NCBI GenBank assembly: GCA_024704765.1
Contig: JAKMXF010000122.1
Coordinates: forward strand, 519,068-583,067
Length of the DNA: 64,000 nt
Direction: 5' to 3'
Source: Oopsacas minuta
Lineage: Eukaryota > Animalia > Porifera
Position 1 is the stretch's first letter. Every line of letters begins with the position of its first letter. The notes under the pieces are model-generated. The model was given only the letters and a program-made list of their open reading frames with translations. It did no database searches and was not told the DNA's origin. This document shows positions 5,407 to 57,583 of this stretch, piece by piece. The translations under genes and the position numbers were made by a program.

Positions 5407-6430
5407 CTGTGTACCTCTTTTATGTGTTAAAATACCAATTTTGAATTGATGAATTGAAAATATCAGATTCACACATTTAATTCAATAGATTAGCACAGTG
5501 AAGAACGGTTAGCTTTTATCAATTAGAAATTGATCCTAACTTGGTAAATGTACTCAATCTCGGATTCAAACTCGGATGAAAGTGTACCGGATCCCGGATT
5601 GACAGCCAGAGCAGAAACTGAATTCGACTATACTACAATAAGCCTCAGCTGTATATACGTATATGGAATCTCTTTGAATTATTTTCTTGAACACAATTTC
5701 TTACAAGGATTTTGATTGGGTCGCAATTTTAATCAATATTTTCTTTGATATATGTAACTTTTGTATCTCGAAATACAGACACCCTAATAACCAAGTTTGA
5801 TACCAACAATACAATTCGGTATCTACACAGAGGGGTGTCAGGGGGGCTGCTCCCGCTGAAAGTAACAAATCATATAACCCTGAGGTGCAATACCAGTCTG
5901 TCGGCTGGCGCTGTATTAATGCGTTATTAAGAACTAATCCTTCCAATTAGATTAAAACTTACCCGAACCTTCCCCGTAAAACGCCTAGTTGAATTAAAGT
6001 GCCAATCAGTTTCAGCAGAACTTGCTTGAACACTAAAATAGACCGTGATAGGTACCAGAGGATTGTAAATTTGCAACCCAGGGCCGTAGGAAGCAAAAGA
6101 ACATTGGTGCGGCGAGAAGTACACGGAGCGAGCATAACGAGCTAACAAAAGTGAGGTTCTGGGTGGTCTTTCCCTCCAGAAAATTTTGATCCTTTCACAC
6201 ACTTAGTCAGTAGTTTAGATGCTATTTTATGTATTGTAAACACATTCTACTACAACATTTTGTGTTATAAAATGAGTGAATATACGTATATTCTGAAGGT
6301 TTACTATTCTACATCTTATCTAATATTTTCTCATCTCCAATGTCACACCTTACAGTACCTGTTCCTACGCAGTGGCGTACCAAGCACTATTGGTACCAGG
6401 GGCGGAATCTGAAGCTGGAACCCCCCTTTT

Positions 6431-14761: not shown

Positions 14762-16454
14762 TTAGTTTGAATCAGGAGTAAATTTCCGTTTTTTTGACAT
14801 TCTAGCATGAATAACATCAATACAATCTCTCTTGAGGCACCAGCAGTAATCAGCCATCATATGAACGTCCCACCTCCCCTTATATCGTGTTTCCATTGTT
14901 TTTATGTCTTGGTGGAATCGTTCACCTTGCTCCTCGGAAACAGCTCCAAGATTCTCTGGAAAATAGTCAATATGACTGTGAAGAAAGTGAACTTTTACAT
15001 TCATATTGCAGCTGAGATTCTTGTAAGATTCAATCAACTCATTCACAAGTATTTTATAATTAGGAGATTTCGTATTTCCCAAGAAGTTTTTCATGACATT
15101 CACAAATGCATTCCACGCACATTTTTCTTTGCATATCATAGAATTTGAAAAATTATCATCTCGAACAAGTTGTCTAATCTGAGGACGTCGAATATACCGG
15201 CTTTTCTTTTTTCATCACTTAGGTAGTAAAACCTCTCGGTAATATATTTGAAACAATTTCCTTCTTTATCTAATGCCCTTACAAACTGTTTCATCAATCC
15301 TAATTTTATATGAAGTGGTGGAAGCAAAATCTTGAGAGGATCCACTAGAGGCTCGTGAATAATGTTCTTATCTCCAATATTAAGATTGGTTCTAGCTGGC
15401 CAGCTCTGTCTAGAATAGTGTTCGCTCTTTGCACGACTGTCCCATAAGCATAAAAAACAAGGGTATTTTGTATATCCTGATTGCTGTCCCAAAAGAATGC
15501 ATATGATTTTTAAGTCACCACAGATTACCCAATTGTGCTGGTTATAATTAATTTTATGAAGCACAATTTTCATGTTATCATATCGTTCCTTTAAACTTAC
15601 TGAATGTCCAATTGGTATGGAACTAAATTTGTTGCCATTATGAAGTAGAACACATTTCAAACTTTGTTTTGAACTATCAATAAAGAGTCTCCAATCATTA
15701 GGTACATACGGACATCCAAGAGCATTAACTAGCGGTGAAACATCATGACAAAACACAAATCCGTCTTCCATTGTGAAATATTTCAAAAATTCGATCTCTC
15801 TGTTCCTATATGAGTAAAATTTTGTTTCTGGGAGAAGCAAGTTTTTTTCTTTTAGCCTAGAACCTAACAACTCCGCAGATTCTTTAGGTAAATCTAAATC
15901 ACGTATCAAATCATTTAATTCAGACTGATTAAATAACTGTGGAGAATTAGAACGAGATAATACACACGGAATAAAATCCTCATCTTCTCTAATTAATGAA
16001 TCTCTAGTTTCACAATCATCAATTTCCGAGATAACACCCAAATTAGTAAATTTTGGAACAGGTACATCAATAGAATGGGGAACGGGTCGTATTGCTGAAT
16101 GTAAATTTGGATACTTGATCAATGACTTGGTTTTAGCATTGAATCCGGAAATAGTCGCCATACAAAAGTAACAATCGCTAATGTGATTTTGTGGCTCTCT
16201 CCATATCATTGGAATTCCAAAACTTAAACTCTTTCTGATTCCTTCTGTCTATTGTCTCAAATTTTCTACACAAGATCGGCATATTGTACGTGGAGCCCAT
16301 GTTTTGTCTTGATCACCTAATCTCATTCCAAAATATTCTAAATATGCTTTTTTAACAAATCCTGTTATTGCCGTAGTTTGTTTAGAAGTCATAAAACTCC
16401 CACAAATATAACAAAGACGTCTGGATCATTACTGCACCTTCTCCGATAAGCCAT
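14762..16454 (-). pseudogene. Second, diverged Chapaev3-type transposase (frameshifted; 5' TIR not found)
   Basis: Same motif set as the 49-50 kb copy (F[C]YICG, WAP, MIWREPQNHISDCYFC, FIDSSK, CGDLK, LPPLHIKLG, SEEQGERFHQD, MMADYCW). TIR-like sequence near 14490-14610 (tatcacgtc motif shared with the other copy). Confidence 0.85.
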
Positions 16455-16839: not shown

Positions 16840-17088
16840 CGGAATGTCTTCATTCTGCCCAAGAACGATGATAAATACTGAAACAAAACTTGATTTTACC
16901 AAAGTAGCGGAATCTTCAGCACGTATCCGGAATGAATACTGAGTTGTTGCTGAGTCAGCATCCAACAATTCTTTAGTTGTAAGAATACCAGAATTATCTG
17001 CCATTTCGAAGGTATCAGTAACATCGGCATCAACAGAGTCAATGAAATATTTAATCTCCCCATTCGTGCCACTGTCAATGTCCACAGC
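16840..17088 (-). CDS. Cadherin exon E (249 nt, phase 0 to 0)
   Basis: AVDIDSGTNGEIKYFI...LDADSATTQYSFRIRAED...IIVLGQNEDIP. Acceptor ttccatag|gct, donor ccg|gtaatt. Confidence 0.9.
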
Positions 17089-17237
17089 CTATGGAAGAAA
17101 TATGAGTAAACAAGAATAGTAATCGAGGATGTCTTACGCGGAACTGCAGGTAAGGCGAAGCAAAAATTTTTGGTTAAGGCATTAGGTTCGGCAAGAGCTC
17201 TGGCGTGGTCGAAAAACCAAATCTATGGTAGGGGATT

Positions 17238-18044
17238 CATGGTATACTATATACACGGGTAGCTAAGCAAGGAATTGCCAAAATACTTTCCAGGCCATTG
17301 ATTATATTCACCTTGATCACGAAGAATTGCAGTTATCATTACAAGTTCATCGAAATATAGGTTTCGACATACGATTAAGACATCTAGAATACATTTGAAT
17401 CGCTTCCCAGGTAATTTTAACCACAATGACGCAATCAAAGTTCACTTTCAATAATGGTAATTATTTTACTAATAAATACCAAAATTATCGAAAAGCCCAC
17501 AAATCCAATGAAATGAATCATGATTCGTATTCACTTAGCACAAAAACACAATAGAAAGACTGTATTAACTAAACTTATAAAAATGGTTAACTGTTATGAC
17601 TTATTGTGTGTTTGCATACATTTTTGATGGAATTTCTTCGATTTTCTAGGATTGATGTTGTTTTACGCGAATATCACTAAAATGATTATTTAACGAGTGT
17701 TTAATACATGAAGATCATCTTGTGACTACTTAAACTAACCTTTCATAAGTAGAAGGTATTTGGATAAAAAGGGTTAGTTTAAGTTTTGAGAATTTCCGAA
17801 ATATTGATAAAAATGAAAAAATTACCATATATGGGCATGAACTTTGATTGCGTTATTGTGGTTAAAATAACTTGGAAAGCTGGTCCAACAGTATTCTAGA
17901 TGTCTCCGCCGTATGTGGAATACTATTCCAGTTGAATTTGTAATGATAATTGCAATCCTTCATGAACAAACAGAATATAATCAATGGCCTGGAAATCATT
18001 TACGCAATTCTTTGCTTAGCTAGCCGTATACATAGTAGGCCATG
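17238..18044. mobile_element. MITE-A, full-length, with near-TSD
   Basis: Same TIRs. Flanks GGGGATT / GAGGATT (6 of 7 identical). Confidence 0.88.
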
Positions 18045-19779
18045 GAGGATTAAAAAATTGGTCCGCACAGGGCCTGACCTAACGTACTTGTTCGGTAGGC
18101 CTTGCATTATCATATTAGTCAATATGGGAAAGATAGGGTCAATCTTAGACATAATGGTATTACTATTTAAAGTGGTCTTGACTCGTGAATACAGACTTGA
18201 AATCGAGTTCACATATCAGAACGAAATGAAATAACTTTGAGTTCAAACCCGAAATAGAAACAATTAACTACAACAATTAACTACAGCAATTGCATTTTAA
18301 AAAAACTCTTCGTATTCATTTACACCTGGATGGAACTGAATCCAAATCCGAATCCGAACAGAACACGATTCAACTCTGCTTAAACAAAAGGTATAAATTA
18401 AATGAAAGGGAAACCATGTCAAAATAGTGCTCTGTTATAGTTCAAGTATGAAACAGCTAAATTTGACAGTGCTCTTTGGGCGCCATGCGACGGGATATAC
18501 TACTTATCACTCCTTGCCTCGAATTGAAAAATATCGGAAATTTAAATTCAAATAATCCATGGTCCTTTCAAAATTGATCTAACTGCATTCTGTGATAATA
18601 CTGAAGCTGCAATGTGGCTTAAGTTTCTGATCTCTGCACTTCGTGCATCGAAAATAATAAAATTTTCATTAAATCACGAAATTCGGTAAATTTTCATTCT
18701 TTGTACAGTCATGATAACGTAATAATCCCATCATGACTTTGCATTGGCCAAAGTCATGAAGGCAGAATATTTAACATATTGAAGAGTAACTGTGATGCAA
18801 TCAATGATATTTTCGAAAAATTCAAAATGGTGGCAATGACGTCAAAGGTTGAATTTTCGCCCAAGACTCAAACGTGTCCGAGCCAGGCCAAATTCCCGTT
18901 TATGCTAAAAGTCAGCACTGGAGGTGTTTCCGTTTCTTGAATCAAATCCGAACATGCAAACCTTCAATCCATTCGGAATATACAAATAAAAATCATAAAA
19001 TGAAACATTAGGAACATGATCAATAATAGTATGACAACATCAATTCAATGAACATGGATTACTTAAGATAACGAGTGGGAAGTTAGCTGAATATTCGACC
19101 AACAGTACTTCAACCTTAATTTGACTAACTTCTCATGGTCAGGATGTAAATTTTTGGACCATTCAAAAGAAGAGACATGGACGTTTCTGAAAATGGATAT
19201 ATACTTTATAAACATTTATTTTTTCTATTAGAAATTGGTGCATCTAAACAGCAGTAGTTCACATGTGAAATTAGTATACTTAAACAAATTATTTTTTCCT
19301 AAAATCATGAGCATGTATTCCTCCTGTATGGACGTTTATGTGTTTAAAATATTATGTACTTTTTCAGATATTTAGGCTTGAAAACTGTCTTGTTTGAGTC
19401 GAGTCTCTATTAGATTTGTAACTAAGCACACAAATTTAATAAAACATTCTGATCCATTCTAACTACAGTAAGGCATACAAATTACGGCAATATCAACTGT
19501 GTTCGATCTCAGTTGATTCTTATGAAGTACTTAATGAATTATAGAATCTGCGAGTAATTTCAATTATGTTATAGCATTTAGTTTCCACATATTCCAAAAT
19601 AGTTAAAATATAATAAATATTTTAAAAGTCGAGTAGAAAAGAATAATCAGATTATAAGATCATATGATCTTTGCATAGTCTTGATTTGTAGTGTTACGAG
19701 TTGATGTATTTAGTTGTTCTGTACCTCTCAAGTAGGTAGCAGAAGTTATGAAGCTATGGGAACTCACATATATAGTTTA

Positions 19780-20250
19780 GGTTAGATTATTGATCTTCAC
19801 TTTTACTGTAATATCAAAATCTATTTCTATCCTGCGTCCTTTACATTCTTTACATTGTTCATCGCTCGTAGCGCGTAAAGTTATGCTCCAGAGATACGCT
19901 GTTTCTACGCTTTCCAAGAATTACAAATATAATCACTGTGATTGTATTCGTAGTTACAAGCTCGCCAACACAAAACTCAAATTCGTAACAATGATAAAAC
20001 TTGCTTCAGCAGATGATCGAAAGTAGGACGCATTTATTTTGCGACTGGACGACTTTCAAACCAATAATTGTGAAATTTAAGAACACATGCTGGATATATA
20101 TATATTAGAAATTATATTACTAAACACATCTGTGCAATCTCTATTCAACCTTTCTCTACCTTGTAAATCGATAAAATGAATACTATCCCATTCACCAATC
20201 TCAAGAAGAAATTCTTCATTGGCGTTGGACTCTGGTGTCATAAGAAATTC
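19780..20250 (-). pseudogene. Possible LINE AP-endonuclease relic
   Basis: FSNIISNI...NFTIIGL resembles the APE N-terminal 'NI.S...IIGLSE' motifs across frames. Confidence 0.3.
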
Positions 20251-20444
20251 ATCAGATTTATCAGATAACGGGGCTATTTGGTCATTAACTGTATTTGAGA
20301 TAATATTGTCGCATTTGATAGGATCTTCATCTTCAAAATCCTCATCAACAGGGAGACGACGAGTATTTTCAAAGCCAGGGGCTGAAGACAATCCGGGGAA
20401 ATTTCGATTCCACATATTCTAGCATTAATGCAATTAGTATAGAC

Positions 20445-21256
20445 CATGGCTACTATATACACCGCTAGCGAAGCAAAGAATTGCCATAGTAAATTCCAGG
20501 CCATTGAAAATATTCTATTTGATCATGAAGGATTGAAACTATCATTACAAATTTAACTGTATAGAGGTTTCCACATATGGTGGAGATATCCAGAATACTT
20601 TCGAATCTGATTTCCAAGATATTTTTTCCACAATGACGCAATCAAAGTTCACTTTCAATAATGGTAATTATTTTACTAATAAATACCAATATTATCTAAA
20701 AACACACAAATCCCATGAAATGAATCATGTTTCGTATTAACTTAGCACAAAAACACAATAGAAAGACTGTATTAACTAAATTATAAAAGAGGTTTGCAAT
20801 TATGACATATTTCGTGTTCGCATACATTTTTTGATGACACTTCTTCGATTTTCTAAGATTGATTTTTTAATGTAGTTTTTACGGCGAATATCACTAAAAT
20901 GATTATTTAACGAGTGTTTATGAAAATCATCTTTTGGTTACCAGAACTAACATTTAACAAGTAGAAGGTATTTTGATCAAAAGGATTAATTTAAGTTTTG
21001 GGAATTCTGAAAAAATTGATAAAAATGGACGAAATGACCATATATGGGCATGAAATTTGATCACGTTATAGTGGTTAAAATAACCTGGAAAGCAGATTCA
21101 AAAATATTCTATATGACTCCATCGTATGTGGAAACCTATTCATAGTTGAATATGTAATTATAACTGCAATCCTTCATGATCAAAGAGAATGTAATCAATA
21201 GGATGGAAATTATTTTGGTAATTCTCAGCTTAGCTAGCCTTGTATATAGTAGGCCA
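20445..21256. mobile_element. MITE-A copy
   Basis: Same TIR and interior sequence; the right tip is cut by the Tc1 remnant. Confidence 0.85.
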
Positions 21257-21703
21257 CAGTGGTACTTACTATAGCAGCAATGGTTTTCCATCAAAATAGC
21301 TGGGTTTTGTAAGGACAATAATCGAAACACCTCAAAAGTGGTCAAGAAATACATGGGCGAAAATATGCCGAATAAATTATGAGGATGGCCAAGTCATAGC
21401 CCAGACATTGATCCCATAGAGAATGTATTCTCCTGAGATTGCCCATCGAAAGACAAAGTTTATTCCCTCACAACTATCAAAGCTAAATCAAATATGGGAT
21501 GGGATAAGCCCCGAATTCCTCGAAATATACTGGCAATCAATGACCAAAAGATGTTAAATAGTATTTGAAAACAACAGATACCCCATAACATATTAAAGCT
21601 AGCACGAAATCCAATATTTATCTTGCTTAGCAGAATTATGTAGGGTATTTTCTAGACGAAATATATTCATTCTTGAATTCTAAATAATTATGGCGCACCA
21701 CTG
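21257..21703 (+). mobile_element. Internally deleted Tc1-like remnant
   Basis: WPSHSPDIDPIENVFS at about 21390-21435. Ends cagtggt(a/g)c... / ...gcgcaccactg|ta. Confidence 0.6.
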
Positions 21704-22849
21704 TATAATAGCTATAAGCGTGAATTAGTTATATACGTGAAACTGAAATATATGGTGAGTCACCTCAATCGTGTAAGAAAGTCTAAAAATATTGTTTCAC
21801 CAGATTATACCTCATTTATTAGGTGTAAAGTAGTAGATACCCCTAGATACACATTTTTAATTGTTTAGCTAATTAACACAATAATGTACTTGTCTATATA
21901 GTAAACAAATATATTCGAAAGGGTACAATATATTTCCAATAAGCTTCAATTCGTTATAACAGTGTTCCGAATGCAATAATCAAATGTAATGGGACTGCAA
22001 GAATAATGCGTTATACCCGTGAATTCGCTATATGCGCGTTGGTTATAAGTGTTACACTGTACATTTTTGATAAAGCAATTGTTCATCCAGCAAATACAGT
22101 ATCCTGGAACCATTGAGAACCCAAATTTTTATAACTCATTGCATGTGTAAGGCCGCATAAAATTTGTTAAATTCAGGAATTTATGACTTATTTAGTTGAA
22201 TAGAAATTCCAATATATTATCTAAATTCAGAGACTAAATACAACCTTCAAAAATATGATATAACTTAGACTTAGTAAAAATATTCCACATATTAGTTTAG
22301 GGCTTTAAACAAATATTAGAAATAAGTTATATTCCTTTTCGAGCAATCTCTGAAAAGTTAAGGTGAATGCATATGCCCAAATTTTGAGTTGTCACTTGTC
22401 CGAAAGAGAGAGAGTATCACTTGTCAGATTAGGTTTTCAGCATATTGTCACTTCTCCGAATAGTTTTCGAGCATGCTGTCACCTGTTCGAATAGTCTTTC
22501 AGCATGTTGTCACCAGTTTGCACACGTAAACAGTCTTGAGATCAGCAACATCTTCCTGGTGTGGAGCCCGAAGAAATAGTCTCTAAGTTTGTCTGGCTTG
22601 TGCAGTATTGAAAATGCCGGCAATTATTATTGCTCATCATTGTCATAGAGCAGGGACAGAATAGCGACTGGATATGGGCAGAAAATCCAGAAAAAATGGG
22701 AAAAGCTGGCAAAACACAGATGTAAGAAGTCAAATTCAAAAATATATATTGAAGATATTTACCATCCAGGTTTTAATAACAAAGTTAACTTTGAAAGTTT
22801 AAACAAGCTGATGCATTCGTAAATCGCTAAAAACCCAAAAGACCTTCCC

Positions 22850-23176
22850 AATTCTATTCTGAGGAAAACATGCTAATTATTTATACCATGTGAATACATA
22901 GAGGACATTAATTGATTGAAATACAAGAATTTCACCAGTAGAAATATTCTATTTTTGATGAGCATTTGTGTGAATTTTGATGTCGTGATTTGAATGCGCC
23001 TAAACGAGGTGAAGGATGGCCGTTTGAACTTTTTAAGTAGTCTTAACTGATTCTTTACATTTTCCAACCCTCTAAAAGTTCAATTCACAAATTTTTAAGG
23101 TCTAATTTATCTTTTAGGAGAAGTATATAAATGGCCTCTCTCTATTATTTGTTGCTCGGCTACTTTCCTATCTGTA
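22850..23176. repeat. Dispersed repeat B (matches 365-545 directly and 1-115 inverted)
   Basis: Shared cctaaacgag.tgaaggatgg...gttgctcggctactttcctatctgta. Confidence 0.7.
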
Positions 23177-23358
23177 TTAAAAGTAGTCTATGTACCATCC
23201 AATCCAATGATGATTGTTCCCATTATAATTTACATAAAAGTTTAGTCGGAAGATGCATCCATGGTACAATAACTATAATCAGTTGTGAGGACTTATGTAA
23301 AAGAGGCTTTGATGAAAAGCAGCTGAACTAATAGATAGCTGAAATTGAAAAGTATGTA

Positions 23359-23862
23359 CATTCGAACCTCTTTTATCAGGGAAGTGCCGGACTGGAGGGT
23401 GACGAAATTTCAGAATTTGCACTGATCTCATAAATAACAAAAACACGATGAGAGATTCAATAATAACATGTAGTCTAATCATCGAGATGAATTTGAATCA
23501 ATGAATTATCTATGAGCAGAGGACGCTTCTCTAGGCGTATGAAATATGATGAAATGATATTTAGGAGCGGAAAAATTGTGTAACACTAATTTACTGATTT
23601 AAGAGCATGAAATTTGAGAGGAAGAGAACAAGGAGCGTCCTCTGAATAACCTCTATAACTTCCTCATTTCAATTGACGAATCTAAATGTTTCAACGGTTT
23701 TAGTTACAAAGAAACGCGTAAAATATGAAGCAAAGTAAAGACAGCTCTATCATAAAGAAATTTTCCTGATAATGGCCAAATAAATTTAAATCCTTTTGGA
23801 AAATGGTGCCGGTAGAAGGAAATGTCTGTAACTCGGAGGTCCGGATAAGAGAGTTTCGAGTG
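23359..23862. mobile_element. pogo/Tigger-type MITE inside the Phantom-like element
   Basis: ta|cattcgaacctcttttatc ... gataagagagtttcgagtg|ta. Confidence 0.7.
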
Positions 23863-25504
23863 TATTAGTAGCTAAATGTAAAACCAATTAATTAATATCT
23901 TGAATCTCGACCCCACAGGTGGAGCGGCACACGGGACCACTTTGCCCCAGATCTTCAATCATTAGACTACAATTATGAGACAATTTAGATGCCTGCATGG
24001 CATAAATAATCAAGTCCTAGACAGGGTCCGAGACACAAACCGCATCTTTTTTCTAACGTTCAATTCACTTTCATCTTCAGATTCAAGTGAAAATGTCTTG
24101 AGTACTAACAATTCTCAAATAGTGCTACTTAAACAAAAATTCCTATGGATTATAAATTCCATCTTAAATCTTGTGGTATAACTTACCTTTGCCAACGTTT
24201 CTTGAATAAATTTTTATTTTTTCCAACTTCCAAACCTCAGAACATATACTGTCGGTTTGAAAGGAAATTAACAGTGGGATGTATTAAATCATCATCTAAT
24301 GAAGACGCTATTAGATTACTTCAGAATCTCTGGGTACATCCGAGGTTCTGTGTCATTGCACAAATATGTTGTGTATAATTTAAGCAGTAACAAAACCTTC
24401 GTTTGGGAGTACATCTCTTTAATTACATTTATAGCTCCTTGTTCCCAATTAGACATCCAGATATAGGAGAAATGGAATGAATTCAAGCAGGTAATCTAGA
24501 ATTTCTATAAAGTTGCTTGCTATAAATTGGGATTCTTAGCTGTAATCAAGAAATGAATAGCCGATGGACTATGTCGTGTCACAGAAACGAATATTTACCA
24601 TAATTGAAAACTGTTTTGGGATTATGTAAAATGTCCCATCAAATTGAATATTTGTAATTTCTGCCAAGAGAGCAATCATCTGTTCAGAAAAGAAAATTAC
24701 ACCAGTCTGATTTTCGCATTATACACTTAATTCGTAATATAAACTGTATTGTGTTGTAGGCAACATGTCACAAATTCGCTTGCCGTGAGTTTGATCATGG
24801 GTTGTATCATTCTTCTAGCTCGATATTCTGGAAACGAAATATTACATGCACTGGGATCCTTTCTTGTGACATAATTGAATACTTTTCTAAGGTTTGCTTG
24901 TGAATAATTTGTAAAGAATATTCATTTCTAAAGTTTATAAACACCTGTCTCATAATCATTAATACCATGATTGTGCGTCTTCATAGGAGTTATAGTATTC
25001 GTTCCTCGATTCAAGCTGCTAGTGGACCTACATCTGGTCCTAAAAATAGGACACTTAGGCAAATAATATTGCCCGTATGTTTAGATTCAAAATATTTATT
25101 TCTGGCAGGAGTTGTGATAACTCGGGAGGAAATCCATTGGTATTCGTCAATAGTATACTCCATATATTTGGATATATCGAAATTTGTTTAAATAAATTAT
25201 ATCGTAAAGTTTTTTATTATTCCTTGATAATCACAAAACTATTGACAAATTATCTTGTATAATTAACATGAGTAGGAGGTTTCGGTGACTAGTGACAACA
25301 GGAAGAAGACTCAGCTAAAGTCAAATAAAACAAAATGTAGAAACTATTGGAGAAGTAACAACATACTGAGAAACTATCCGGACAAGGACAACATGCTAAA
25401 AAACTATTCGGACAAGTGACAACAACATTGCTTTCAGTATGACAAAGGGCAGTTCAAAATTCAGACATATACAACTCCCCAGTAAGTAAGTTCTCATTAA
25501 CAAT

Positions 25505-25713
25505 AGACTTCACAAATTATCTATGGAATCCATTTTATCAGTTGCGAGGGTATTATTGGAAGATTCTGAGATAAATCCAAAGACAAAAGTCAATAAGTTG
25601 CAAATTTTTGGCATACAAGGGTTATTAAAATCCGACATAACAGGTATCAATCCAAAATATTGCCTATCTGGCCGGAATGGTAGGGCTAAGGATAATAATA
25701 AATGTAATCGCAA
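25505..25713 (-). pseudogene. Possible LINE AP-endonuclease relic
   Basis: IPVMSDFN...SIDNL resembles the 'GDFN...IDN' APE motifs. Confidence 0.3.
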
Positions 25714-25784
25714 CTAACCTAATTAACAAATCGGGGATGGAACGGCTAGTTTACAGGAATTCATCCCAAGTATGCACTTGTGGT

Positions 25785-25857
25785 CAGGGCTGTATCAACT
25801 CATTTTATTGAATCAGTTAAATGAGTTGGTAGAAAAAAATGAGTTGATACAGCCCTG
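25785..25857. mobile_element. 73-bp hAT-type micro-MITE
   Basis: Perfect 22-bp TIRs cagggctgtatcaactcatttt and exact 8-bp TSD CTTGTGGT. Confidence 0.9.
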
Positions 25858-26326
25858 CTTGTGGTGATAAAAGTAAAGATGTAGGGAAATCTTGTCATAG
25901 ATAATCATCACTAACAATCGTGTACAAACCAATATTAAAGCAAACACACGATCTGCAATCCTGCATATGTGATTCTATGTTGCCCTAGCCTCGTGCTACT
26001 CTAGATACGCCTATGTTCATTCATACTTCAGAATAAGCATAAAATGCATATGGGTACTTAGCCCAATAGCCAATACAATAGACCAATCTCGATATAATAG
26101 AAAGGACCAATTGTGTATTTGTATAACGAAAGTTTTCGATGCTACATGGATCTATGACTTGTAGGTATTAAAATCTTTATTTTACTGAAAATCAGCCACG
26201 GCAATTTCGCCAAAGGTCAATTGCGCAACAATTATCGGCAACAATTCATTTATACTGTATTACAAATTACATGATTATAAATTGCACAATCCGCCAAACG
26301 CTATATCAGGCATCAGCCATAAATAT

Positions 26327-28205
26327 TAGGCCGGATCGAGAAAAGTATACATCGTCGCTTCAACTTCTACCTAAGGCAAAACTTGCCTTTACTCTTTTCC
26401 AGGAAAATGCGAGACATAAATTTGAAAAATATTTCGAGTTGACCCTTGCGGTTTTATATTTTTGCTGTGTCACTTTCGCAAACTTGACTTTAAATTGTCC
26501 GAATTTTCTAATTCCGTTGACTTAGCCCCTTTAGATATATTATTTGGTAATAGTAAGTCGCATATTTGCTTTCGAATGGTGTATTAGGCTAATTTATATG
26601 TCCAAAGATACTCAAGTTATCAAGATATTTTTTGCATATTCTATCATACCCTAATAATATTATCCACCCCCCTTTTCCCCCGAAGATTTGCAAATGCATA
26701 ATTCTTACAAAAAATAGCTATATCCTCACCAAACTTAGTATAATTCTGTATCTAGATCCAAATTCATCAATAGATTACCACAAAGAAATTTTACTAACTT
26801 TCCTTGTCTCTTGCTCTTAACCTAGTTACCATTTATCTAGCATGGAATTTATGGTCAATTATTGCATCTAAATAAAAACTCACTCAAATCACTCATATTA
26901 TAGAGTGATTATATTCCTATAATTTATGTAATTTTGAATATGGTAGGATACACGCTTAGTATTGTAGTATTTCATCCTGTTTTTCGTTATCCTGGACCCA
27001 TCCCAGAAAATCTACTCCCAATAAAACTAGATCTATACAATCATCATAGTATGCTTAGAAATGAAGATTCTAAATCAACTAGAGATGATATAGCGAAAGA
27101 ATTAACTGAAGTATTAGTGCGTATCTATAATTTGGCTTCCATACCCACAAAATCAGAGCTCCAAATATGACAGTACATCATTTCTGATATTATTGAGAGA
27201 GCTAAATACTACAGAAAAAGTATCCAAAACAAGTAATAGCCTGACCGTGTCCAGCCTACAATTCCGAATTCAATGTCTTGTTCCACGTCTCAAGTTGCAA
27301 ATGCCTAATTCAAGAAGCAAAAAGTTTTGCTCTCTCGATAATATCAGAAATGATGTACTGTCATATTTGGAGCTCTGATTTTGTGGGTATGGAAGCCAAA
27401 TTATAGATACGCACTAATACTTCAGTTAATTCTTTCGCTATATCATCTCTAGTTGATTTAGAATCTTCATTTCTAAGCATACTATGATGATTGTATAGAT
27501 CTAGTTTTATTGGGAGTAGATTTTCTGGGATGGGTCCAGGATAACGAAAAACAGGATGAAATACTACAATACTAAGCGTGTATCCTACCATATTCAAAAT
27601 TACATAAATTATAGGAATATAATCACTCTATAATATGAGTGATTTGAGTGAGTTTTTATTTAGATGCAATAATTGACCATAAATTCCATGCTAGATAAAT
27701 GGTAACTAGGTTAAGAGCAAGAGACAAGGAAAGTTAGTAAAATTTCTTTGTGGTAATCTATTGATGAATTTGGATCTAGATACAGAATTATACTAAGTTT
27801 GGTGAGGATATAGCTATTTTTTGTACAGAATTATGCATTTGCAAATCTTCGGGGGAAAAGGGGGGTGGATAATATTATTAGGGTATGATAGAATATGCAA
27901 AAAATATCTTGATAACTTGAGTATCTTTGGACATATAAATTAGCCTAATACACCATTCGAAAGCAAATATGCGACTTACTATTACCAAATAATATATCTA
28001 AAGGGGCTAAGTCAACGGAATTAGAAAATTCGGACAATTTAAAGTCAAGTTTGCGAAAGTGACACAGCAAAAATATAAAACCGCAAGGGTCAACTCGAAA
28101 TATTTTTCAAATTTATGTCTCGCATTTTCCTGGAAAAGAGTAAAGGCAAGTTTTGCCTTAGGTAGAAGTTGAAGCGACGATGTATACTTTTCTCGATCCG
28201 GCCTA
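26327..28205. mobile_element. Palindromic (5'-5' foldback) derivative of a hATm-like transposon
   Basis: TAGGCC...GGCCTA termini and an exact 8-bp TSD ATAAATAT (26319-26326, 28206-28213). Arms of about 876 bp (26327-27202 / 27329-28205) are near-identical, with a 126-bp spacer. Arms encode HPVF..P...LLP..D...DIAKEL...IY..ASIPT. Confidence 0.85.
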
Positions 28206-28490
28206 ATAAATATATTCGACTGGTAGTCTAGTTATTATGGCAATGAATATTTACAGTCGAAACAGTCTGTTTACAATTTCTTTGCAGGAAAAGAAATAGT
28301 ATGAAAAAACAGAGAGAGGAACAAAACATGAAAATGGATGAAATCCTACATTCTTCTGTTATACATAAAAAAGGATTTCACACACCTAATCAAGATCGTA
28401 ATTCGGACTTCGCCACCATAAGGACAGATAATATTTTAGATGTTAAATTGAATGTTTGTTTGTAAGAAAATTGAATTACGTACTACAAAC

Positions 28491-40026: not shown

Positions 40027-41333
40027 CTAGGTTGTCCAAAAAGTTCGCGGAATTTTATCCCTAGTTTGTGTTATATACACTCTATCAATTAGCCTATTGT
40101 TTCGATTAATTCTAATATCCCTTATCTCAATTATCTCACTTTTGTAATCAAAAAGTTTGGTTTAGGTATTCTTTTAGCATCATTTACGATTGTCGTATTT
40201 TTTCTAAAATGGAAAACTCAGAAGATGGGAAACGATATATCATTTGGTTTCTCTGGAAACAAAATAAAAGTGGAAGCGAGATTCTCTACGAGATGGAAAA
40301 GGTTTATGGTAGTAAATGCCCTGGTAAATCGATGGTTTACAAATGGATTGACAGATTTAATGATGGGCATTAACTGTTGATGATAACCCAAGACCTGGTC
40401 GTCCGAAAACATGTTCCAACCAAGAAAATATCAAAATTATATCAAACATTCTTGATAAAGATAGACGTGTGACTCTGCGGCAGTTAGAGGAAGAATTGGG
40501 GATGTCAAAATCAATACTTGATAAGATTCTAACTGAACAATTGGGAATGTCGAGAGTTCTTTCTCGTTGGGTTCCCAAATTGTTATCTGAATCTCAAAGG
40601 ATTGAAAGGGTTCGTGTTTGTCGCCAGCTCTTACGGATTTCTAAGAAAGAGCCAAGGTTCTTTGATCGTTTAGTCACAGGGGACGAGACTTGGTTACATT
40701 TTTATGAGCCTAAGACAAGTTTACAGACGAGTCAATGGAAGCGTAGGCATGAAGCAACTCCTATTAGACCCAGAGCCGTCTCATCAGCAGGTAAACGGAT
40801 GGCAACAGTTTTTGGGACACAAAGGGAATAATCATGATTGATTGGTTACCTAACAAAGTAACAATAAATACTGAATACTATGTTCAAGTTCTGAAGAAAT
40901 TGCGCGAAGCTATCAAGTCTAAGAGGTGTGGCAAGTTGAGTTCTCATGTTTTGCTTCAGCATGATAATGCTCCAGCCCATACCAGCAGGCGAACTTTGGA
41001 TGAAATTCAACATTTAGGGTTCGAATTACTCCCACATCCCCCACACAGCCCAGATCTAGCGCCCAGCGACTACTGCCTTTTTTCAGAAATGAAAAGACCA
41101 CTTAGAGGTAAACGTTTCAGCGATTTTGAGCACCTTAGGTCCGCTGTAAATTCATGGATTCAAGGTACCCCTGAAAATTCTTCACCACAGGAATAAATAA
41201 CTCCCATCAAAATGGAAGAAATGTATCGAGGTTAAGGGTGAATTTATTGAAAACTATGAACAATAATTAGTTGAGTATGATCATTGATAAATAAAATATA
41301 TTTGCAATTCCGCGAACTTTTTGGACAAGCTGG
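40027..41333 (+). mobile_element. mariner (DD34D) element, copy 1, frameshifted
   Basis: TIRs ctaggttgtccaaaaagttcgcggaatt / aattccgcgaactttttggacaagctgg, TA on both flanks. Motifs WVPKLL, TGDETW, HDNAPAH, HSPDLAPSD; 34 residues between the second and third D. Confidence 0.93.
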
Positions 41334-48630: not shown

Positions 48631-51064
48631 CACTGGGCAACATCAAATTTATTCCTCAAATGAAAATATATTACCTAGACTAACTTTGGGATGCTGATTC
48701 CAAATCTGAAATCAGAATTGGTCTATCACGTCAGGATTTCAAGATATGAAAATTCGCGAAATTCGGATTTTGCATTGATTGGTACTATATTATAAGGTAC
48801 TATACAGTACAAGTTAGGCCTATTGTACAATTTTCTTTCCCAGCGAATTGTTGGTCAACAATGCATATTATGTACGGTTAATATTAACATTATTTTGTAA
48901 ATGTAATGTTCTATCTTTTGACAATTAATGCATTCTTGAGTGTTCTTGGCCATGGCTATAAGGAGGGGTTATTTAGCCTACTTGCGGGTGGACTGTAGAC
49001 TGTATCGATAAACCAACAACATTACTGTTTCGCAGAATTTTTAGTTTGTAACTGATTGTGTATTTAAGCTTTTTGTTTACAATGAATACGAGCAGAAGAC
49101 AATGCACGAACCACCCAGATAACTTCTGCTATATTTGTGGAAAATTTACGCCGAAGCACCAGCGAAGAAATATTGCCAATCGTGTCAAGATTGGCTACAA
49201 GTATTACTTTGGTTGCAAAGTTGGTGACCAAGACAAGAACTGGGCACCTCACATCTGCTGTACCGTCTGCTATGCCAGTCTAATCCAATGGCTTAATGGA
49301 AAGAAGAAATCCATGCCATTTGCGGTACCTATGATTTGGCGAGAACCTAAAAACCATACGTCGGATTGTTATTTTTGCACAACAAATATTGCTGGATTTT
49401 CGTCTAAAAATAAGTCGAAAATCATCTATCCAACATGCAAGTCTGCTCTAAAACCAGTAGAGCATGATGCTGGCAATGGAATTCCTGTACCAATCTCACC
49501 TTCATTGGATACTATTGAAATGGATTCAACAGACGAAGTAGACGTGGCAGATGCAGATTCCACTTCTGATTTTTCGGATCATGATGAAAACGACAAAATG
49601 ATTCCCATGGACCAGGCATTTTGAATGACCTGGTGCGTGATTTATCTCTTTCCAAAGAAAAAGCTGAGCTTCTAGGGTCTCGCCTAAAGGAATTAAATTT
49701 GTTAAAGCCAGGAACAACAATTTCACATTTTCGTCGACGACATGCAAATGTTTCGGCTTACTTTAAATTCGAAGACTGTGTGTGTTTTTGCACTGATGTT
49801 GATTCACTCATGTATGAGCTTGGCCGCGAACACATTAGCACTGAGTGGAGACTGTTCATTGATTCCAGCAAAGCTAGTTTGAAAGCTGTCCTACTACACA
49901 ATGGAATGAAAAGCCTTCTGTCCCTATTGCTCATGCTGTCGGCTTGAAGGAGACGTACGAGTCTATGGAAACCATCCTAAGGGTCATTGACTACCGGGCT
50001 CACAACTGGAACATATGTGGAGACCTTAAAGTTGTGTCACTTTTGCTCGGATTGCAGTTGGGTTACACCAAGCATATGTGTTTTCTCTGTCTGTGGGACA
50101 GTAGAGACGAGGCAAACCACTATGACACAACCGAATGGCCAATGAGAACTGACTACATTGTTGGAAGATATAATGTTAAGTGCAAATCCCTTATTGATCC
50201 CAGCAAAGTGTACTTGCCACCACTTCATATTAAACTCGGCCTGATCAAACAATTTGTGAAGGCAATGTATTTCAATGGAGATGGATTCCTACACATAAAA
50301 GAAAAGTTTGGTGCTATACTAAGTGACGCTAAACTGAGAGCTGGGATATTTGTTGGCCCCCAAATACGTGATTTGATGCGTGGCCCAGTATTTCCATCCA
50401 AGCTTAATTCAATTGAATTGGAAGCCTGGAATGCATTTGTACAGATTGTACAAAATTTTCTTGGAAACCATAGGGTAGAAAATTACTCGGAACTAGTGGA
50501 CAATTTGCTGGAATCATACCGCAAAATGGGCTGCAGAATGTCGCTTAAACTGCATTTTCTTCATTCACACTTGGACTTTTCCCATCAAACCTGGGTGATG
50601 TGAGCGACGAACATGGAGAAAGATTTCACCAAGACATCTCTGTGATGGAATCGCGGTATAGAGGTCGATTTAACCCAAACATGATGGGGGACTACTGCTG
50701 GTTTCTCCAGCGTGAAACTGACACTGAACATGCTCGAAAGAGCAAGTGCATAAAGCACTTTTGAGAGGATACAATGTTATTTTTGTCTGGTTTAATCATC
50801 CTGGGTTGTGTTAAATTGTGCAAAATGATAATTCTGTAATTTTCACTAGCAATCACTGTGTTTATTACATGTAATGTTTTGTTCTGCACAGCCAAAATTA
50901 GCCAAAATGAGAATTACGGGTTGTTGTGTGCATATGTCATATCTCAAAAACGTGACGTGTTAGAAAAATCTAAGGCCAGATTTGGATTCAGCATGGCCAT
51001 ATTAGTCTAGGTAAACTTGAAACGAGCAAGGAATAAAAAATAAGTTGTAAAATGTTGTCCAGTG
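48631..51064 (+). mobile_element. Chapaev3-type (CMC superfamily) DNA transposon, both ends present
   Basis: Termini cactgggcaacat / atgttgtccagtg with TAA on both flanks (the TWA TSD and CAC ends described for Chapaev3). It splits the right TIR of the MULE described below. Confidence 0.85.
49082..50764 (+). pseudogene. Chapaev3-type transposase with three -1 frameshifts
   Basis: FCYICG...WAPHICCTVC...PMIWREPKNHTSDCYFC; WRLFIDSSKASLKAVLLHNG; ICGDLKVV; HMCFLCLWDSR; LPPLHIKLG; after the last frameshift SDEHGERFHQD...MMGDYCW. Confidence 0.85.
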
Positions 51065-53150: not shown

Positions 53151-55526
53151 CAGTGGTTCCCAATCGGTGGTCCGCGGCCCCACTTGGGGCCACAGGACTA
53201 TTTACATGAGGCCATCAGATCTCATTATAAATGAATAGTTTCCTCTTTGTATATACTACAATTTGTACCCAAAAATTATCATTGTTTGTATATATATTTA
53301 ATTGTTTATTAGGATTTGATTAAAAGCTCCTCACTATTAAAAGTACATTATCCTCCTCTCCGGAATTCTGTCAATTTGTAAACAATTGATTCTTGTCACT
53401 TATTTTTGTGTCGTTCATTATACGAAGCTTTACCTATTCGTGTTGATAAATAATTTCTTATGTGGTATCCAATCCTAGCAAAGCAAAGCGCGCTCGTACC
53501 GATATTATGCATTAACATTGATCGCATATAAAAGCGTTCTTTTAGTTTCATAACTCATTACAAAGTAAATGGCAACATCCAACACTGCTTCAAGAAAAAG
53601 GAAATACCATGAATCATATATTGAACATGGTTTCACTTCAATTATTACCTCTAAAGGAGAAGAAAAACCTCAATGCGTTCTGTGCGGGGATATTTTTTCA
53701 ATAGAAGCTATGAAGCCGAGTAAAATGAAACGACATCTCACATCTTGCCATCCTGAACATGCTAATAAAGATGGAGAATTTTTTAAATACAAAGCACAAG
53801 CGATGAAAAGAATGCGTTTGGATGCAGACGGGCAATTTCAATCTCAGACAAAGGCTGCAATCGAGGTTTCATATGAAATATCCCTCAAGATTGCCCAAAT
53901 GAAAAAGCCACATACAATCGGAGAGGAATTAATTATTCCTTGTGCTTATGATATTGTTCGACTCTTAATTGGAGAAGATCATGTAAAGAAATTAAGCTCC
54001 TTACCATTGTCGAATAATACAGTTCAGAGACGAATTTCAGACATGTCAAATGACATATGCAAGCAAGTCATAGCAGAAATTAAAAATACTCCTTTTGGCT
54101 TATTCAGCTTACAATTGGATGAGAGTACTGATGTGGAAGATTGTGCTCAACTCATGGCCTTTACTCGTTATGTAAGAGATGGTCATTTAAAAGAAGAATT
54201 TCTCTTTTGCAAATCACTTGAAACAACCACAAAAGCTATAGATGTCTTTGAAAAGGTTCAAGTCTTTTTTGAAATGTATGGAATTCAATGGGGAAATTTA
54301 TGCGGCGTATGCACAGATGGCGCACCTTCAATGCTTGGTTCTAGATCCGGTTTTCAAACATTAGTTAAGGATAAGTCCCCTACTGTTACTGGAACACATT
54401 GTATGATTCATAGGCAAATGTTGGCTGCAAAGACACTACCTGATATACTACAAGGCATCCTCGAGAATGTAATCAAGGCAGTAAATTGGATTAAAAGGAG
54501 AGCACTAAATAACCGGCTATTTCGACAACTTTGTCAAGAAATGGGAGCAGATCACGAAGTATTGCTATATCATACTGAGGTTCGATGGCTATCAAAGGGG
54601 AAAGTGTTGAAACGTGTACTTGACCTGAGAGCAGAAATGTGTGAGTTTTTCAGTAAGATGGGTCAAAATGAGTTCCAAAGTATATTCAAGAACCAGAATC
54701 TATTTGGACTGGCTTATTTAGTTGATATCTTCAATTGTTTTAACCAACTCAATCTCAATCTTCAAGGTCGTGATGCTTCAGTTTTAGAGTTGGTTGAGAA
54801 GTTCAAAGCTTTCATAATGAAAATGCAACTTTGGTCTTGTAAATTGAAAGATAACAAATATTTCATGTTTCCCACTCTCTCCGAAATGATCGAAACTTCC
54901 GGGTTTGAATTGAATATCGAATTCATAAATGCAATGATCAAACATTTAGCAATTTTGTGCGAAGAATTTTCTCGCTATTTCCCACAACTATCAACTGAAT
55001 CATTTACACTCGTTAGGGATCCATTTGGAATGAATGTTGAAGATGTACCTGAGATATTTCAAGAGGAATTTATTGAGATGTTAAACGATAGTTTAGCAAA
55101 GAACAGATATCAAACAATACCCTTAAACGAATTTTGGCTGTCACTAATTGAGATGTATCCCCTTATTTCAGAATCTGCATTACGCACTCTGATCCCATTC
55201 CGGACAACATATTTATGTGAAAATGCTTTTTCTACCTTGATGACTATTAAAACAAAGAAACGCAATCGTTTACAAGTAGAAGATGATTTGAGATGTGCTA
55301 TTTCTACTACAAAACCAAAAATTAAAGAGCTTGTCCTGAAAAAGCACAAGCAAACCTGATATTTCAAATTTCCATAATGGTAGAGTATTTTCATATATTA
55401 TAAATTACATGCCAAAATAATGAGTTGATAATTTACAATTGTGTAATTTATGTTCAATGTGTGGGGCCACCTACCTAGCTCCATGGCTGAATGGGGTCTT
55501 GGGGTGGCAAGGGTTGGGAACCACTG
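53151..55526 (+). mobile_element. Full-length hAT transposon, Buster/Charlie clade
   Basis: TIRs cagtggttcccaa / ttgggaaccactg. Identical 8-bp TSD ATATAAAC on both sides, with the central TA expected for Buster elements. Contains one uninterrupted transposase ORF. Confidence 0.95.
53569..55359 (+). CDS. hAT (Buster-type) transposase, 596 aa, ORF uninterrupted
   Basis: BED-type CxxC...H...H (PQCVLC...RHLTSCH), LQLDESTD, VCTDGAPSM, THCMIH, EVRWLSKG, and C-terminal dimerisation region TTYLCENAFS. Confidence 0.92.
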   Translation: MATSNTASRKRKYHESYIEHGFTSIITSKGEEKPQCVLCGDIFSIEAMKPSKMKRHLTSCHPEHANKDGEFFKYKAQAMKRMRLDADGQFQSQTKAAIEVSYEISLKIAQMKKPHTIGEELIIPCAYDIVRLLIGEDHVKKLSSLPLSNNTVQRRISDMSNDICKQVIAEIKNTPFGLFSLQLDESTDVEDCAQLMAFTRYVRDGHLKEEFLFCKSLETTTKAIDVFEKVQVFFEMYGIQWGNLCGVCTDGAPSMLGSRSGFQTLVKDKSPTVTGTHCMIHRQMLAAKTLPDILQGILENVIKAVNWIKRRALNNRLFRQLCQEMGADHEVLLYHTEVRWLSKGKVLKRVLDLRAEMCEFFSKMGQNEFQSIFKNQNLFGLAYLVDIFNCFNQLNLNLQGRDASVLELVEKFKAFIMKMQLWSCKLKDNKYFMFPTLSEMIETSGFELNIEFINAMIKHLAILCEEFSRYFPQLSTESFTLVRDPFGMNVEDVPEIFQEEFIEMLNDSLAKNRYQTIPLNEFWLSLIEMYPLISESALRTLIPFRTTYLCENAFSTLMTIKTKKRNRLQVEDDLRCAISTTKPKIKELVLKKHKQT

Positions 55527-55797: not shown

Positions 55798-57583
55798 TAG
55801 TGAAACCCCTGGAATCGGGGAACCTCTGAAATCGGGGCACTTGAATTTCGCGAAAATATTTTCCTATACAAATGAACCTCTGGAATCGGGGAAATAGCGA
55901 CAATCGGGGAATCGGGGCAAACCCTGAAAATCTAATTCTTTCAACTTGCATAGAACTAATGCTAAAATCCCCTACGCAATCGGGGCATCAATACTGAAAT
56001 CAACTCAATAAATTTTTAATTTCGCAATAACTATCGAATAAAACACAATATACCAGGTTGTCCAAAAAGTTCGCGGAATTGCAAATATATTTTATTTATC
56101 AATGATCATACTCAACTAATTATTGTTCATAGTTTTCAATAGATTCACCTTTAACCTCGATACATTTCTTCCATTTTGATGGGAGTTTATTTATTCCTGT
56201 GGTGAAGAATTTTCAGGGGTACCTTGAGTCCATGAATTTACAGCGGACCTAAGGTGCTCAAAATCGCTGAAACGTTTACCTCTAAGTGGTCTTTTCATTT
56301 CTGAAAAAAGGCAGTAGTCGCTGGGCGCTAGATCTGGGCTGTATGGGGGATGTGGGAGTAATTCGAAACCCTAAATGTTGAATTTCATCCAAAGTTCGCC
56401 TGCTGGTATGGGCTGGAGCATTATCATGCTGAAGCAAAACATGAGAACTCAACTTGCCACGCCTCTTAGACTTGATAGCTTCGCGCAATTTCTTCAGAAC
56501 TTGAACATAGTATTCAGTATTTATTGTTACTTTGTTAGGTAACCAATCAATCATGATTATTCCCTTTGTGCCCAAAAAACTGTTGCCATCCGTTTACCTG
56601 CTGATGCGACGGCTCTGGGTCTAATAGGAGTTGCTTCATGCCTACGCTTCCATTGACTCGTCTGTAAACTTGTCTTAGGCTCATAAAAATGTAACCAAGT
56701 CTCGTCCCCTGTGACTAAACGATCAAAGAACCTTGGCTCTTTCTTAGAAATCCGTAAGAGCTGGCGACAAACACGAACCCTTTCAATCCTTTGAGATTCA
56801 GATAACAATTTGGGAACCCAACGAGAAAGAACTCTCGACATTCCCAATTGTTCAGTTAGAATCTTATCAAGTATTGATTTTGACATCCCCAATTCTTCCT
56901 CTAACTGCCGCAGAGTCACACGTCTATCTCTATCAAGAATGTTTGATATAATTTTGATATTTTCTTGGTTTCAACAGTTGAATGCACATCATTAAATCTG
57001 TCAATCCATTTGTAAACCATCGATTTACCAGGGCATTTACTACCATAAACCTTTTCCATCTCGTAGAGAATCTCGCTTCCACTTTTATTTTGTTTCCAGA
57101 GAAACCAAATGATATATCGTTTCCCATCTTCTGAGTTTTCCATTTTAGAAAAAATACGACAATCGTAAATGATGCTAAAAGAATACCTAAACCAAACTTT
57201 TTGATTACAAAAGTGAGGATAATTGAGATAAGGGATATTAGAACTAATCGAAACAATAGGTTAATTGATAGAGTGTATATGACACAAACTAAGGATAAAA
57301 TTCCGCGAACTTTTTGGACAACCTAGTAAATGCTACGTAAGTGAACAAGAAACCAATTCAATCCGCCTCTGAGGGTAAATATGTAGCAGAATGAAATATT
57401 TTAACGTTACAGTGTGACTAGCAATACGAAACAATAGTGCGACATAATATGAACTACATAAATACGGAAAATGGTGATTTTGACACAATTCCACACCAAA
57501 ATCCAGAATCGGGGAATTTCCACAATCGGAGCGTAAGAAATTTTCCCAGTATCCCACATGCCCTGATTCCAGAGGTTTCACTG
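55798..57583. mobile_element. Tc1/pogo-type MITE (~510 bp without its mariner insert)
   Basis: TIRs (t/c)agtgaaacc(c/t)ctggaatc, TA duplication, internal aatcgggg repeats. Confidence 0.8.
56053..57326 (-). mobile_element. mariner copy 2, near-identical to 40027-41333, inverted, with a short internal deletion
   Basis: Same TIRs and TA flanks. The two 120-aa ORFs are identical except near the C-terminus. About 35 bp are missing near 56975-56985. Confidence 0.93.

Follow-up and report, generated by a model that had tools for sequence, protein, structure and literature searches.

The maize locus Mu killer is an inverted duplication derived from MuDR, for which siRNA production and heritable silencing in trans have both been proven (PMC3440606). 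In a second system, inverted fragments of Ac result from the element's own aberrant transposition or replication, and the resulting inverted duplications are transcribed into dsRNA (10.1101/2020.01.07.897926). Long inverted repeats are also found as a regular feature of some transposon families: Galileo, a member of the P superfamily, is a long-TIR, Foldback-like DNA transposon (PMC3688188, PMC3573991), and long-TIR elements of the hATm type carry TIRs of 417 and 575 bp (PMC6004678).

A locus that can be set beside each of these systems is present in the genome of the glass sponge Oopsacas minuta, within a 64-kb stretch of DNA that was analysed as a whole and is referred to here as the window. 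Positions 26327–28205 of the window form a 1,879-bp near-perfect palindrome, as established by inverted-repeat search and global alignment. Like Mu killer, this palindrome holds two copies of a TIR together with the 5' part of a transposase gene in inverted orientation, and a long hairpin RNA is expected whenever the host gene is read through. Unlike Mu killer, which belongs to the MuDR/Mutator group and to a plant, the sponge locus is hAT-like, ends cleanly in transposon termini flanked by a TSD, and is at most a putative silencer. It shares the hAT superfamily with the inverted Ac fragments; these, in contrast, stem from alternative transposition with re-replication, lie inside larger rearrangements, are not mobile units and come with measured siRNAs and silencing (10.1101/2020.01.07.897926). 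The resemblance to Galileo and the long-TIR hATm elements lies in cut-and-paste transposition, in TIRs of hundreds of base pairs and in non-autonomous derivatives that consist almost entirely of inverted repeat. Whereas a long TIR is the family standard in those elements, the standard here is ~367 bp, and the window copy has been extended to 880 bp through duplication of the 5' leader and coding sequence; unlike in those elements, the junction of the window copy also reveals how such an extension probably came about. Fold-back derivatives of transposons are an already known kind of element, to which the window locus adds a real and tidy example. Taken as a whole, the locus is probably a non-autonomous fold-back derivative of a hAT-like O. 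minuta transposon family, mobilised in trans and now persisting as a neutral intronic relic rather than as a selected silencer. Its parts are as follows.

26319–26326, no strand: left TSD ATAAATAT, an exact 8-bp direct repeat of 28206–28213
26327–27206, plus strand: left arm, 880 nt, from the inverted-repeat search and global alignment
27207–27324, plus strand: spacer or hairpin loop, 118 nt, canonical coding sequence running on from the left arm
27325–28205, minus strand: right arm, 881 nt, an inverted copy of left-end positions 1–880
28206–28213, no strand: right TSD ATAAATAT, an exact 8-bp direct repeat of 26319–26326

When 26327–27206 was aligned with the reverse complement of 27325–28205, three differences were found, namely a 1-nt indel and mismatches at 27194 and 27203, both of which sit at the inner edge of the palindrome. 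The inverted-repeat search returned the same structure as two segments, 26706–27206/27325–27825 at 100% and 26319–26714/27818–28213 at 98%. The indel is an additional G in the right arm, opposite 26706; because this letter is absent from relatives, it is read as a later change in the right arm. A first-pass annotation of the window, made from its letters alone, had described near-identical arms of ~876 bp with a 1-nt indel and few substitutions, TAGG...CCTA ends and an exact 8-bp TSD, and all of this holds, with arms of 880 and 881 nt. The termini read TAGGCCGG or, in a longer reading, TAGGCCGGATCGAG and its complement, and ATAAATAT stands on both sides. The terminal 19-mer occurs twice in the 64-kb window, at the two ends of the palindrome (0.02 occurrences expected by chance), and no further copy or fragment of the palindromic element was found within the window. 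The inner 532 nt of the hairpin have a predicted fold of -377 kcal/mol (z -43).

The comparison set for this element consisted of nine loci (L001–L009), taken as the DNA around ORF matches in ENA assemblies, which may not be O. minuta. From these loci, a canonical element of ~3 kb emerges, with native TIRs of ~367 bp and a transposase of roughly 750 aa. L003:7389–10439 is a complete element of 3,051 bp that has TIRs of ~370 bp, 92–96% alike, and reads TAGGCCGG..CCGGCCTA at its ends; its 8-bp TSD has decayed to 6 matching letters out of 8. The terminus of an older copy, L002, reads TAGGGCGG, and the first four letters alone are common to all copies. Read from the outside inward, the left arm of the window copy consists of the native TIR, the 5' leader and the start of the transposase gene; it thus equals the canonical left end and aligns at 86% with positions 1–955 of L003. 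The limit of the native TIR within the arm was placed by end alignment of L003, L004 and L006, in which the similarity between left and right ends stops at element position ~367.

26327–26693, plus strand: native-TIR part of the arm, ~367 nt, from the limit of left/right similarity in L003, L004 and L006

Inward of this limit, left ends read ATGCATAAT and right ends TTGTACTAGC, and both window arms are of the left type at the diagnostic positions 368–376. Judged by this sequence, the window element has two true left ends and lacks the native right subterminal region, since past the native TIR both arms are left-type, down to the first ~76 codons of the transposase gene and a shared TGA. An 880-nt palindrome was found in none of the nine comparison copies, the inverted right end of which stops at ~346–388 nt of left-end sequence. 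The proposal that the arms are more than TIRs, and represent an inverted duplication of the left end, is therefore upheld. The possibility that the parent natively has TIRs of ~880 bp, raised in the same annotation, falls away, as its right and left ends differ inward of ~367 bp. That an element with two left ends had still transposed was also claimed; the intact TSD agrees with this, but the movement is unremarkable, as canonical ends are already ~367-bp inverted repeats that are 92–96% alike. Because the native long TIRs make the outer left and right ends equivalent, movement of a derivative with two left ends is to be expected. An unrelated palindromic element of ~700 bp (L001:4710–5417), with arms of ~320 nt that are 98–100% complementary, directly adjoins the L001 family copy at that copy's left terminus.

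The inner part of the arms and the spacer preserve the beginning of a transposase gene.

26940–27340, plus strand: broken N-terminal coding remnant of a transposase, from translations, intact relatives and hhalign
27168–27170, plus strand: premature TGA, AAA (Lys) in relatives, with its mirror at 27361–27363 in the right arm

The remnant opens with an ATG at 26940 and is interrupted by the stop at 27168–27170, by a double stop at 27234–27239 and by a frameshift, after which LFHVSSCKC follows. In translation, the arm peptide (HPVF..LLP..DIAKEL..ASIPT) is present as annotated, and both arms include the first ~76 codons of the transposase gene. A word-index protein search with the coding piece of the arm yielded 12 short ORFs from ENA assemblies (P0001–P0012). 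These undamaged relatives start with MAEYTRSK, run through DIAKEL and ASIPT, carry Lys at the position of the window's TGA and continue in frame into EFNVLFDISSCKC; the spacer's LFHVSSCKC corresponds to LFDISSCKC in the relatives, where it is in frame. At 27169, the base is A in all other family contigs. When compared with a profile of 60 family proteins by hhalign, the arm peptide aligned to positions 7–78 with a probability of 95% and an E-value of 4e-8. Searches of Pfam with the arm peptide, the spacer peptide and the internal ORFs of L003 gave nothing significant, and an exact look-up of the arm ORF returned no matching record, a result that does not demonstrate absence. The palindromic element encodes nothing functional. 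These data support the earlier observations that the arms run into a transposase N-terminus and that a premature TGA is present in both of them; the spacer does carry on the transposase coding sequence as had been noted, but its length is 118 nt, not 126. In the same region of L005, a miniature fold-back can be seen at 6218–6290, where a local inverted duplication of 19 nt has the palindromic GAATTC at its centre and lies just before the LFDISSCKC codons.

A search with an internal ORF led to annotated O. minuta proteins, the longest of which has 403 aa. Using a 403-aa O. minuta protein (P0013) as query, an exhaustive phmmer search at E-values of 1e-3 or better delineated a transposase family of 4,541 representative clusters (50% identity), with a typical full length of 720–780 aa. 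Eight full-length relatives gave no Pfam match at E-values up to 0.1, PF05699 included, and none of the PDB sequences was matched significantly in a profile search. ESM Atlas look-alikes of the C-terminal piece scored at most 0.86, belonged to unrelated bacterial clusters and were uninformative. An alignment of 60 full-length members (A1) showed conserved blocks, comprising the N-terminal ASIP and LFDI..CKC motifs, FDGRKD, GCDGT.VNTG, W.IC.LH.NELPLRH and the C-terminal HTQAVER, with D319/D323, D393, C422, H425 and E428 invariant. With an alignment of 60 sequences as input, AlphaFold2 modelled the full-length relative P0039 at a mean pLDDT of 88.5; the N-terminal 160 residues, with the ASIP and LFDI..CKC..C.C motifs, are confidently folded in this model. 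In a Foldseek comparison, the top hit was the hAT transposase Hermes (E 1e-5), followed by the P element. With VIA-align, the match to Hermes had a Z-score of 17.1 over 346 residues at an rmsd of 4.8 Å, compared with 11.2 for the next family, and paired model residues 270–736 with Hermes residues 135–609, thereby reaching Hermes residue 609 at the C-terminus. The P0039 model displays a Hermes-like, RNase H-like DDE core that is interrupted by an all-alpha insertion domain.

Because the model matches the Hermes fold and the arm peptide aligns to the family profile, the family is one of hAT-fold transposases, consistent with the 8-bp TSD. Thus, a very large metazoan transposase family without a Pfam model, comprising thousands of clusters, turns out to have a Hermes-type fold. 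The hATm group has been defined by TAGGGTG ... CACCCTA termini, by PF05699 and by a clade of Repbase sequences, and its members have an 8- or 9-bp TSD and, in some cases, long TIRs (PMC6004678). The present family has an 8-bp TSD and native TIRs of ~367 bp, as hATm elements do, and termini, TAGGCCGG..CCGGCCTA, that have only TAGG in common with theirs. The first-pass assignment to a hATm-like family is thus sustained with respect to the hAT fold (Hermes Z 17.1) and the 8-bp TSD, but membership in the strict sense is not supported by the termini, which are not TAGGGTG; PF05699 was not detected in the eight relatives, although the structural match extends to the C-terminal Hermes residue 609. 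When compared by hhalign with the classical hAT ORF of the window (53569–55356), the family profile gave a weak local match in the block of the second Asp and CxxH (probability 7.8%), too weak to count as evidence.

The origin of the second left end can be read at the centre of the palindrome, where two short segments face each other.

27191–27206, plus strand: left-hand half of a 16-nt inverted repeat native to the parent (TATTGAGAGAGCTAAA), at the inner edge of the palindrome
27325–27340, plus strand: right-hand half of the same repeat (TTTTGCTCTCTCGATA), after which canonical sequence gives way to the turn-back

In the centre alignment, the window matches canonical sequence up to 27340 (..GCTCTCTCGATA) and then continues as the inverted arm. 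Beyond this point, canonical copies proceed with AGAAGATACCAC, which encodes KKIPRREWPFLFDQR, and the loose end that one read contig of the window's own genome shows at 27341 corresponds to the canonical continuation, AAAGATACCAC. Positions 27325–27340 are complementary to 27191–27206 at 14 of 16 letters, the two exceptions being the inner-edge mismatches between the arms. The 1,014-nt left end (26327–27340) was scanned for microhomology, with pairs of 16-mers required to be complementary at 14 or more of 16 letters and to be spaced by 30–400 nt; a single pair, 27191/27325, qualified. L005 and L006, which are not palindromic, carry this inverted pair as well, and L007 has it with one mismatch more. 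Because the junction pair is native to canonical copies, fold-back template switching is the simplest reading of the palindrome.

According to this reading, the left end would have been in the process of being copied, most likely during gap repair or replication linked to transposition, as the anatomy of the junction suggests. The new strand would have reached ..GCTCTCTCGATA (27340) and folded onto the near-complementary TATTGAGAGAGC, ~120 nt upstream. The folded strand would then have copied itself back out to the terminus, giving rise to an element with a left end on either side, arms of 880 nt and a loop of 118 nt in which the transposase gene carries on. With transposase provided in trans, the resulting hairpin element could have been moved and inserted, with an exact 8-bp duplication, into a cadherin intron; such mobilisation is possible because the outer ~367 nt of each arm are the normal TIR of the family. 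We infer the fold-back from its end product, and the scar would look no different after an intermolecular switch between sister strands. In gene amplification, short inverted repeats start palindromes by fold-back priming or template switching, as in yeast, Tetrahymena and mammalian cells. Those palindromes, like the one described here, have a short native inverted repeat at the centre and perfect arm copies that extend outward; unlike them, the sponge palindrome is bounded by a transposon terminus, and the product is itself a mobile element. The locus thereby provides a clean natural example of a cut-and-paste transposon lengthening its inverted repeats, with the putative causal microhomology legible in both parent and product.

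Two readings in which no such fold-back took place were weighed against the reads and the comparison loci. Four sequencing runs of one sample, none of them recorded as RNA, contain the stretch, and the short-read contigs of these runs were compared with it. No contig or read spanning the whole palindrome was found among the short-read contigs, and at several positions the private letters of the window occur in no contig, contigs being prone to drop rare variants; both observations would fit an assembly fold-back artefact, with the palindrome absent from the animal. Against an artefact stand the exact termini and perfect TSD inside an otherwise continuous intron, the joints between flanks and termini, both of which were confirmed at 100% identity in three runs (with flank contigs ending 26 nt inside the termini), and the two inner joints, both found in diverged copies of the family. 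An artefact is accordingly extremely improbable. Two copies inserted head to head or nested, with a later deletion between them, would produce a similar arrangement without fold-back synthesis, and adjacent and nested transposon insertions are indeed common in related loci (e.g., L001 and L004). This scenario predicts independent arms, yet the arms are identical save one indel, whereas family copies differ by 5–25%. Moreover, the junction coincides with the one inverted microhomology native to the left end, which a random deletion would not bring about, and the whole unit is flanked by one clean 8-bp TSD; an origin from two insertions is thus very unlikely.

The contigs also bear on the copy number and age of the fold-back derivative. 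Contigs from other loci match precisely as far as 26327 or 28205, beyond which their flanks differ, and the summed k-mer depth of the element is ~20–100 times that of its flanks, showing that it belongs to a repeat family. Diverged contigs bridge the joint between spacer and right arm, with 4 differences in 117 letters (27250–27366) and 6 in 134 (27286–27419). Since these contigs, 3–4% different, cross the joint, there must be one or more further palindromic copies that share this junction. Contig depths suggest several such copies, depth from contigs being a poor measure, and a word search for them with the peptide that spans the joint returned no candidate, which does not demonstrate their absence. 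The copies differ from one another by 3–4%, compared with an arm likeness of ~99.9% within the window copy; either the event is recurrent at the same microhomology, or it is older and the arms have been kept alike by conversion.

The element resides in a long intron of a host gene.

17089–28490, minus strand: GT-AG intron of the host cadherin gene, holding the element, from a spliced contig of run X4

The intron was delimited by a contig of one of the sequencing runs, X4, whose loose end at 28490 matches 17058–17087 exactly and which joins 17087/88 to 28490/91, with one C ambiguous. The right end of the element is 285 nt from the splice donor, and minus-strand ORFs with cadherin domains lie on both sides, in the flanking exons. 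In X4, exon depth is 380–1167, compared with 0–2.4 in the unique flanks within the intron. Although its kind on record is unknown, X4 behaves as RNA-derived, given this contrast in depth and the spliced contig. The location in a transcribed cadherin intron, as first annotated, is thus borne out, and because the element lies inside that intron, the pre-mRNA should contain a near-perfect hairpin of ~880 bp. X4 also holds many contigs of the family, one of which, from a diverged copy, runs across the joint between spacer and right arm; hence, the family is apparently transcribed somewhere in the genome.

Such a hairpin invites the question of whether the locus acts as a silencer in the manner of Mu killer. 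Here, a hairpin transcribed from the cadherin pre-mRNA or from promoters in the arms would be converted into small RNAs that act in trans to silence the TIR, the promoter and the transposase mRNA of the family, making the element a mobile, host-transcribed repressor. In anatomy, the locus agrees with Mu killer as an inverted duplication of a TIR and part of the 5' transposase gene (PMC3440606), and it also resembles the inverted pieces of Ac by which Ac/Ds is silenced (10.1101/2020.01.07.897926). The transcription of the host intron, the family contigs in the RNA-like run X4, including the one over the joint, and the extreme predicted stability of the hairpin all fit this picture. However, the same hairpin is expected from any long-TIR element in a transcribed intron, and an intact transposase was not seen among the nine loci or the annotated O. 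minuta proteins (longest 403 aa), so that neither the autonomous parent for which a search had been proposed nor a living target for silencing came to light there. A-to-I editing of the arms, likewise put forward as a sign of dsRNA, finds no echo in X4, which lacks an excess of A-to-G changes relative to the DNA runs. In addition, a demosponge in which RNA and dsRNA viruses are abundant yielded no detectable Dicer-type small RNAs (PMC6085071); the processing of long dsRNA is therefore not to be assumed in sponges. A silencing function is, in our estimation, unlikely, and the locus is most likely a transposon relic that sits neutrally in its intron without having been selected as a silencer. 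DNA transposons account for 15% of O. minuta DNA (PMC10280926). Whatever its status, the locus offers a defined substrate for asking whether glass sponges turn long endogenous dsRNA into small RNAs.

A broader idea concerns the family rather than the window copy. The 16-nt inverted repeat in the 5' coding region of the transposase could conceivably make the family shed mobile hairpins repeatedly, each carrying the TIR, promoter and N-terminus, into transcribed introns, where they would feed an RNAi or piRNA response. We regard this as a long shot; if true, one of the animal lineages that branched off earliest would carry a self-limiting 'killer generator' as a built-in feature.

Other transposon-derived sequences occur in the window. 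Another intron of the same cadherin gene contains an uninterrupted 596-aa ORF (53569–55359, plus strand) with the look of a classical hAT or FAM200/GTF2IRD2-type transposase; this copy may still be active or may have been domesticated. Two copies of a transposon-like protein family with the motifs MIWREP.NH.SDCYFC and LPPLHIKLGL, for which there is no Pfam match, are located at 14762–16209 (minus strand) and 49058–50603 (plus strand). Finally, two nearly identical mariner-like coding remnants lie in opposite orientation, ~15 kb apart, at 40469–41196 (plus strand) and 56282–56919 (minus strand).
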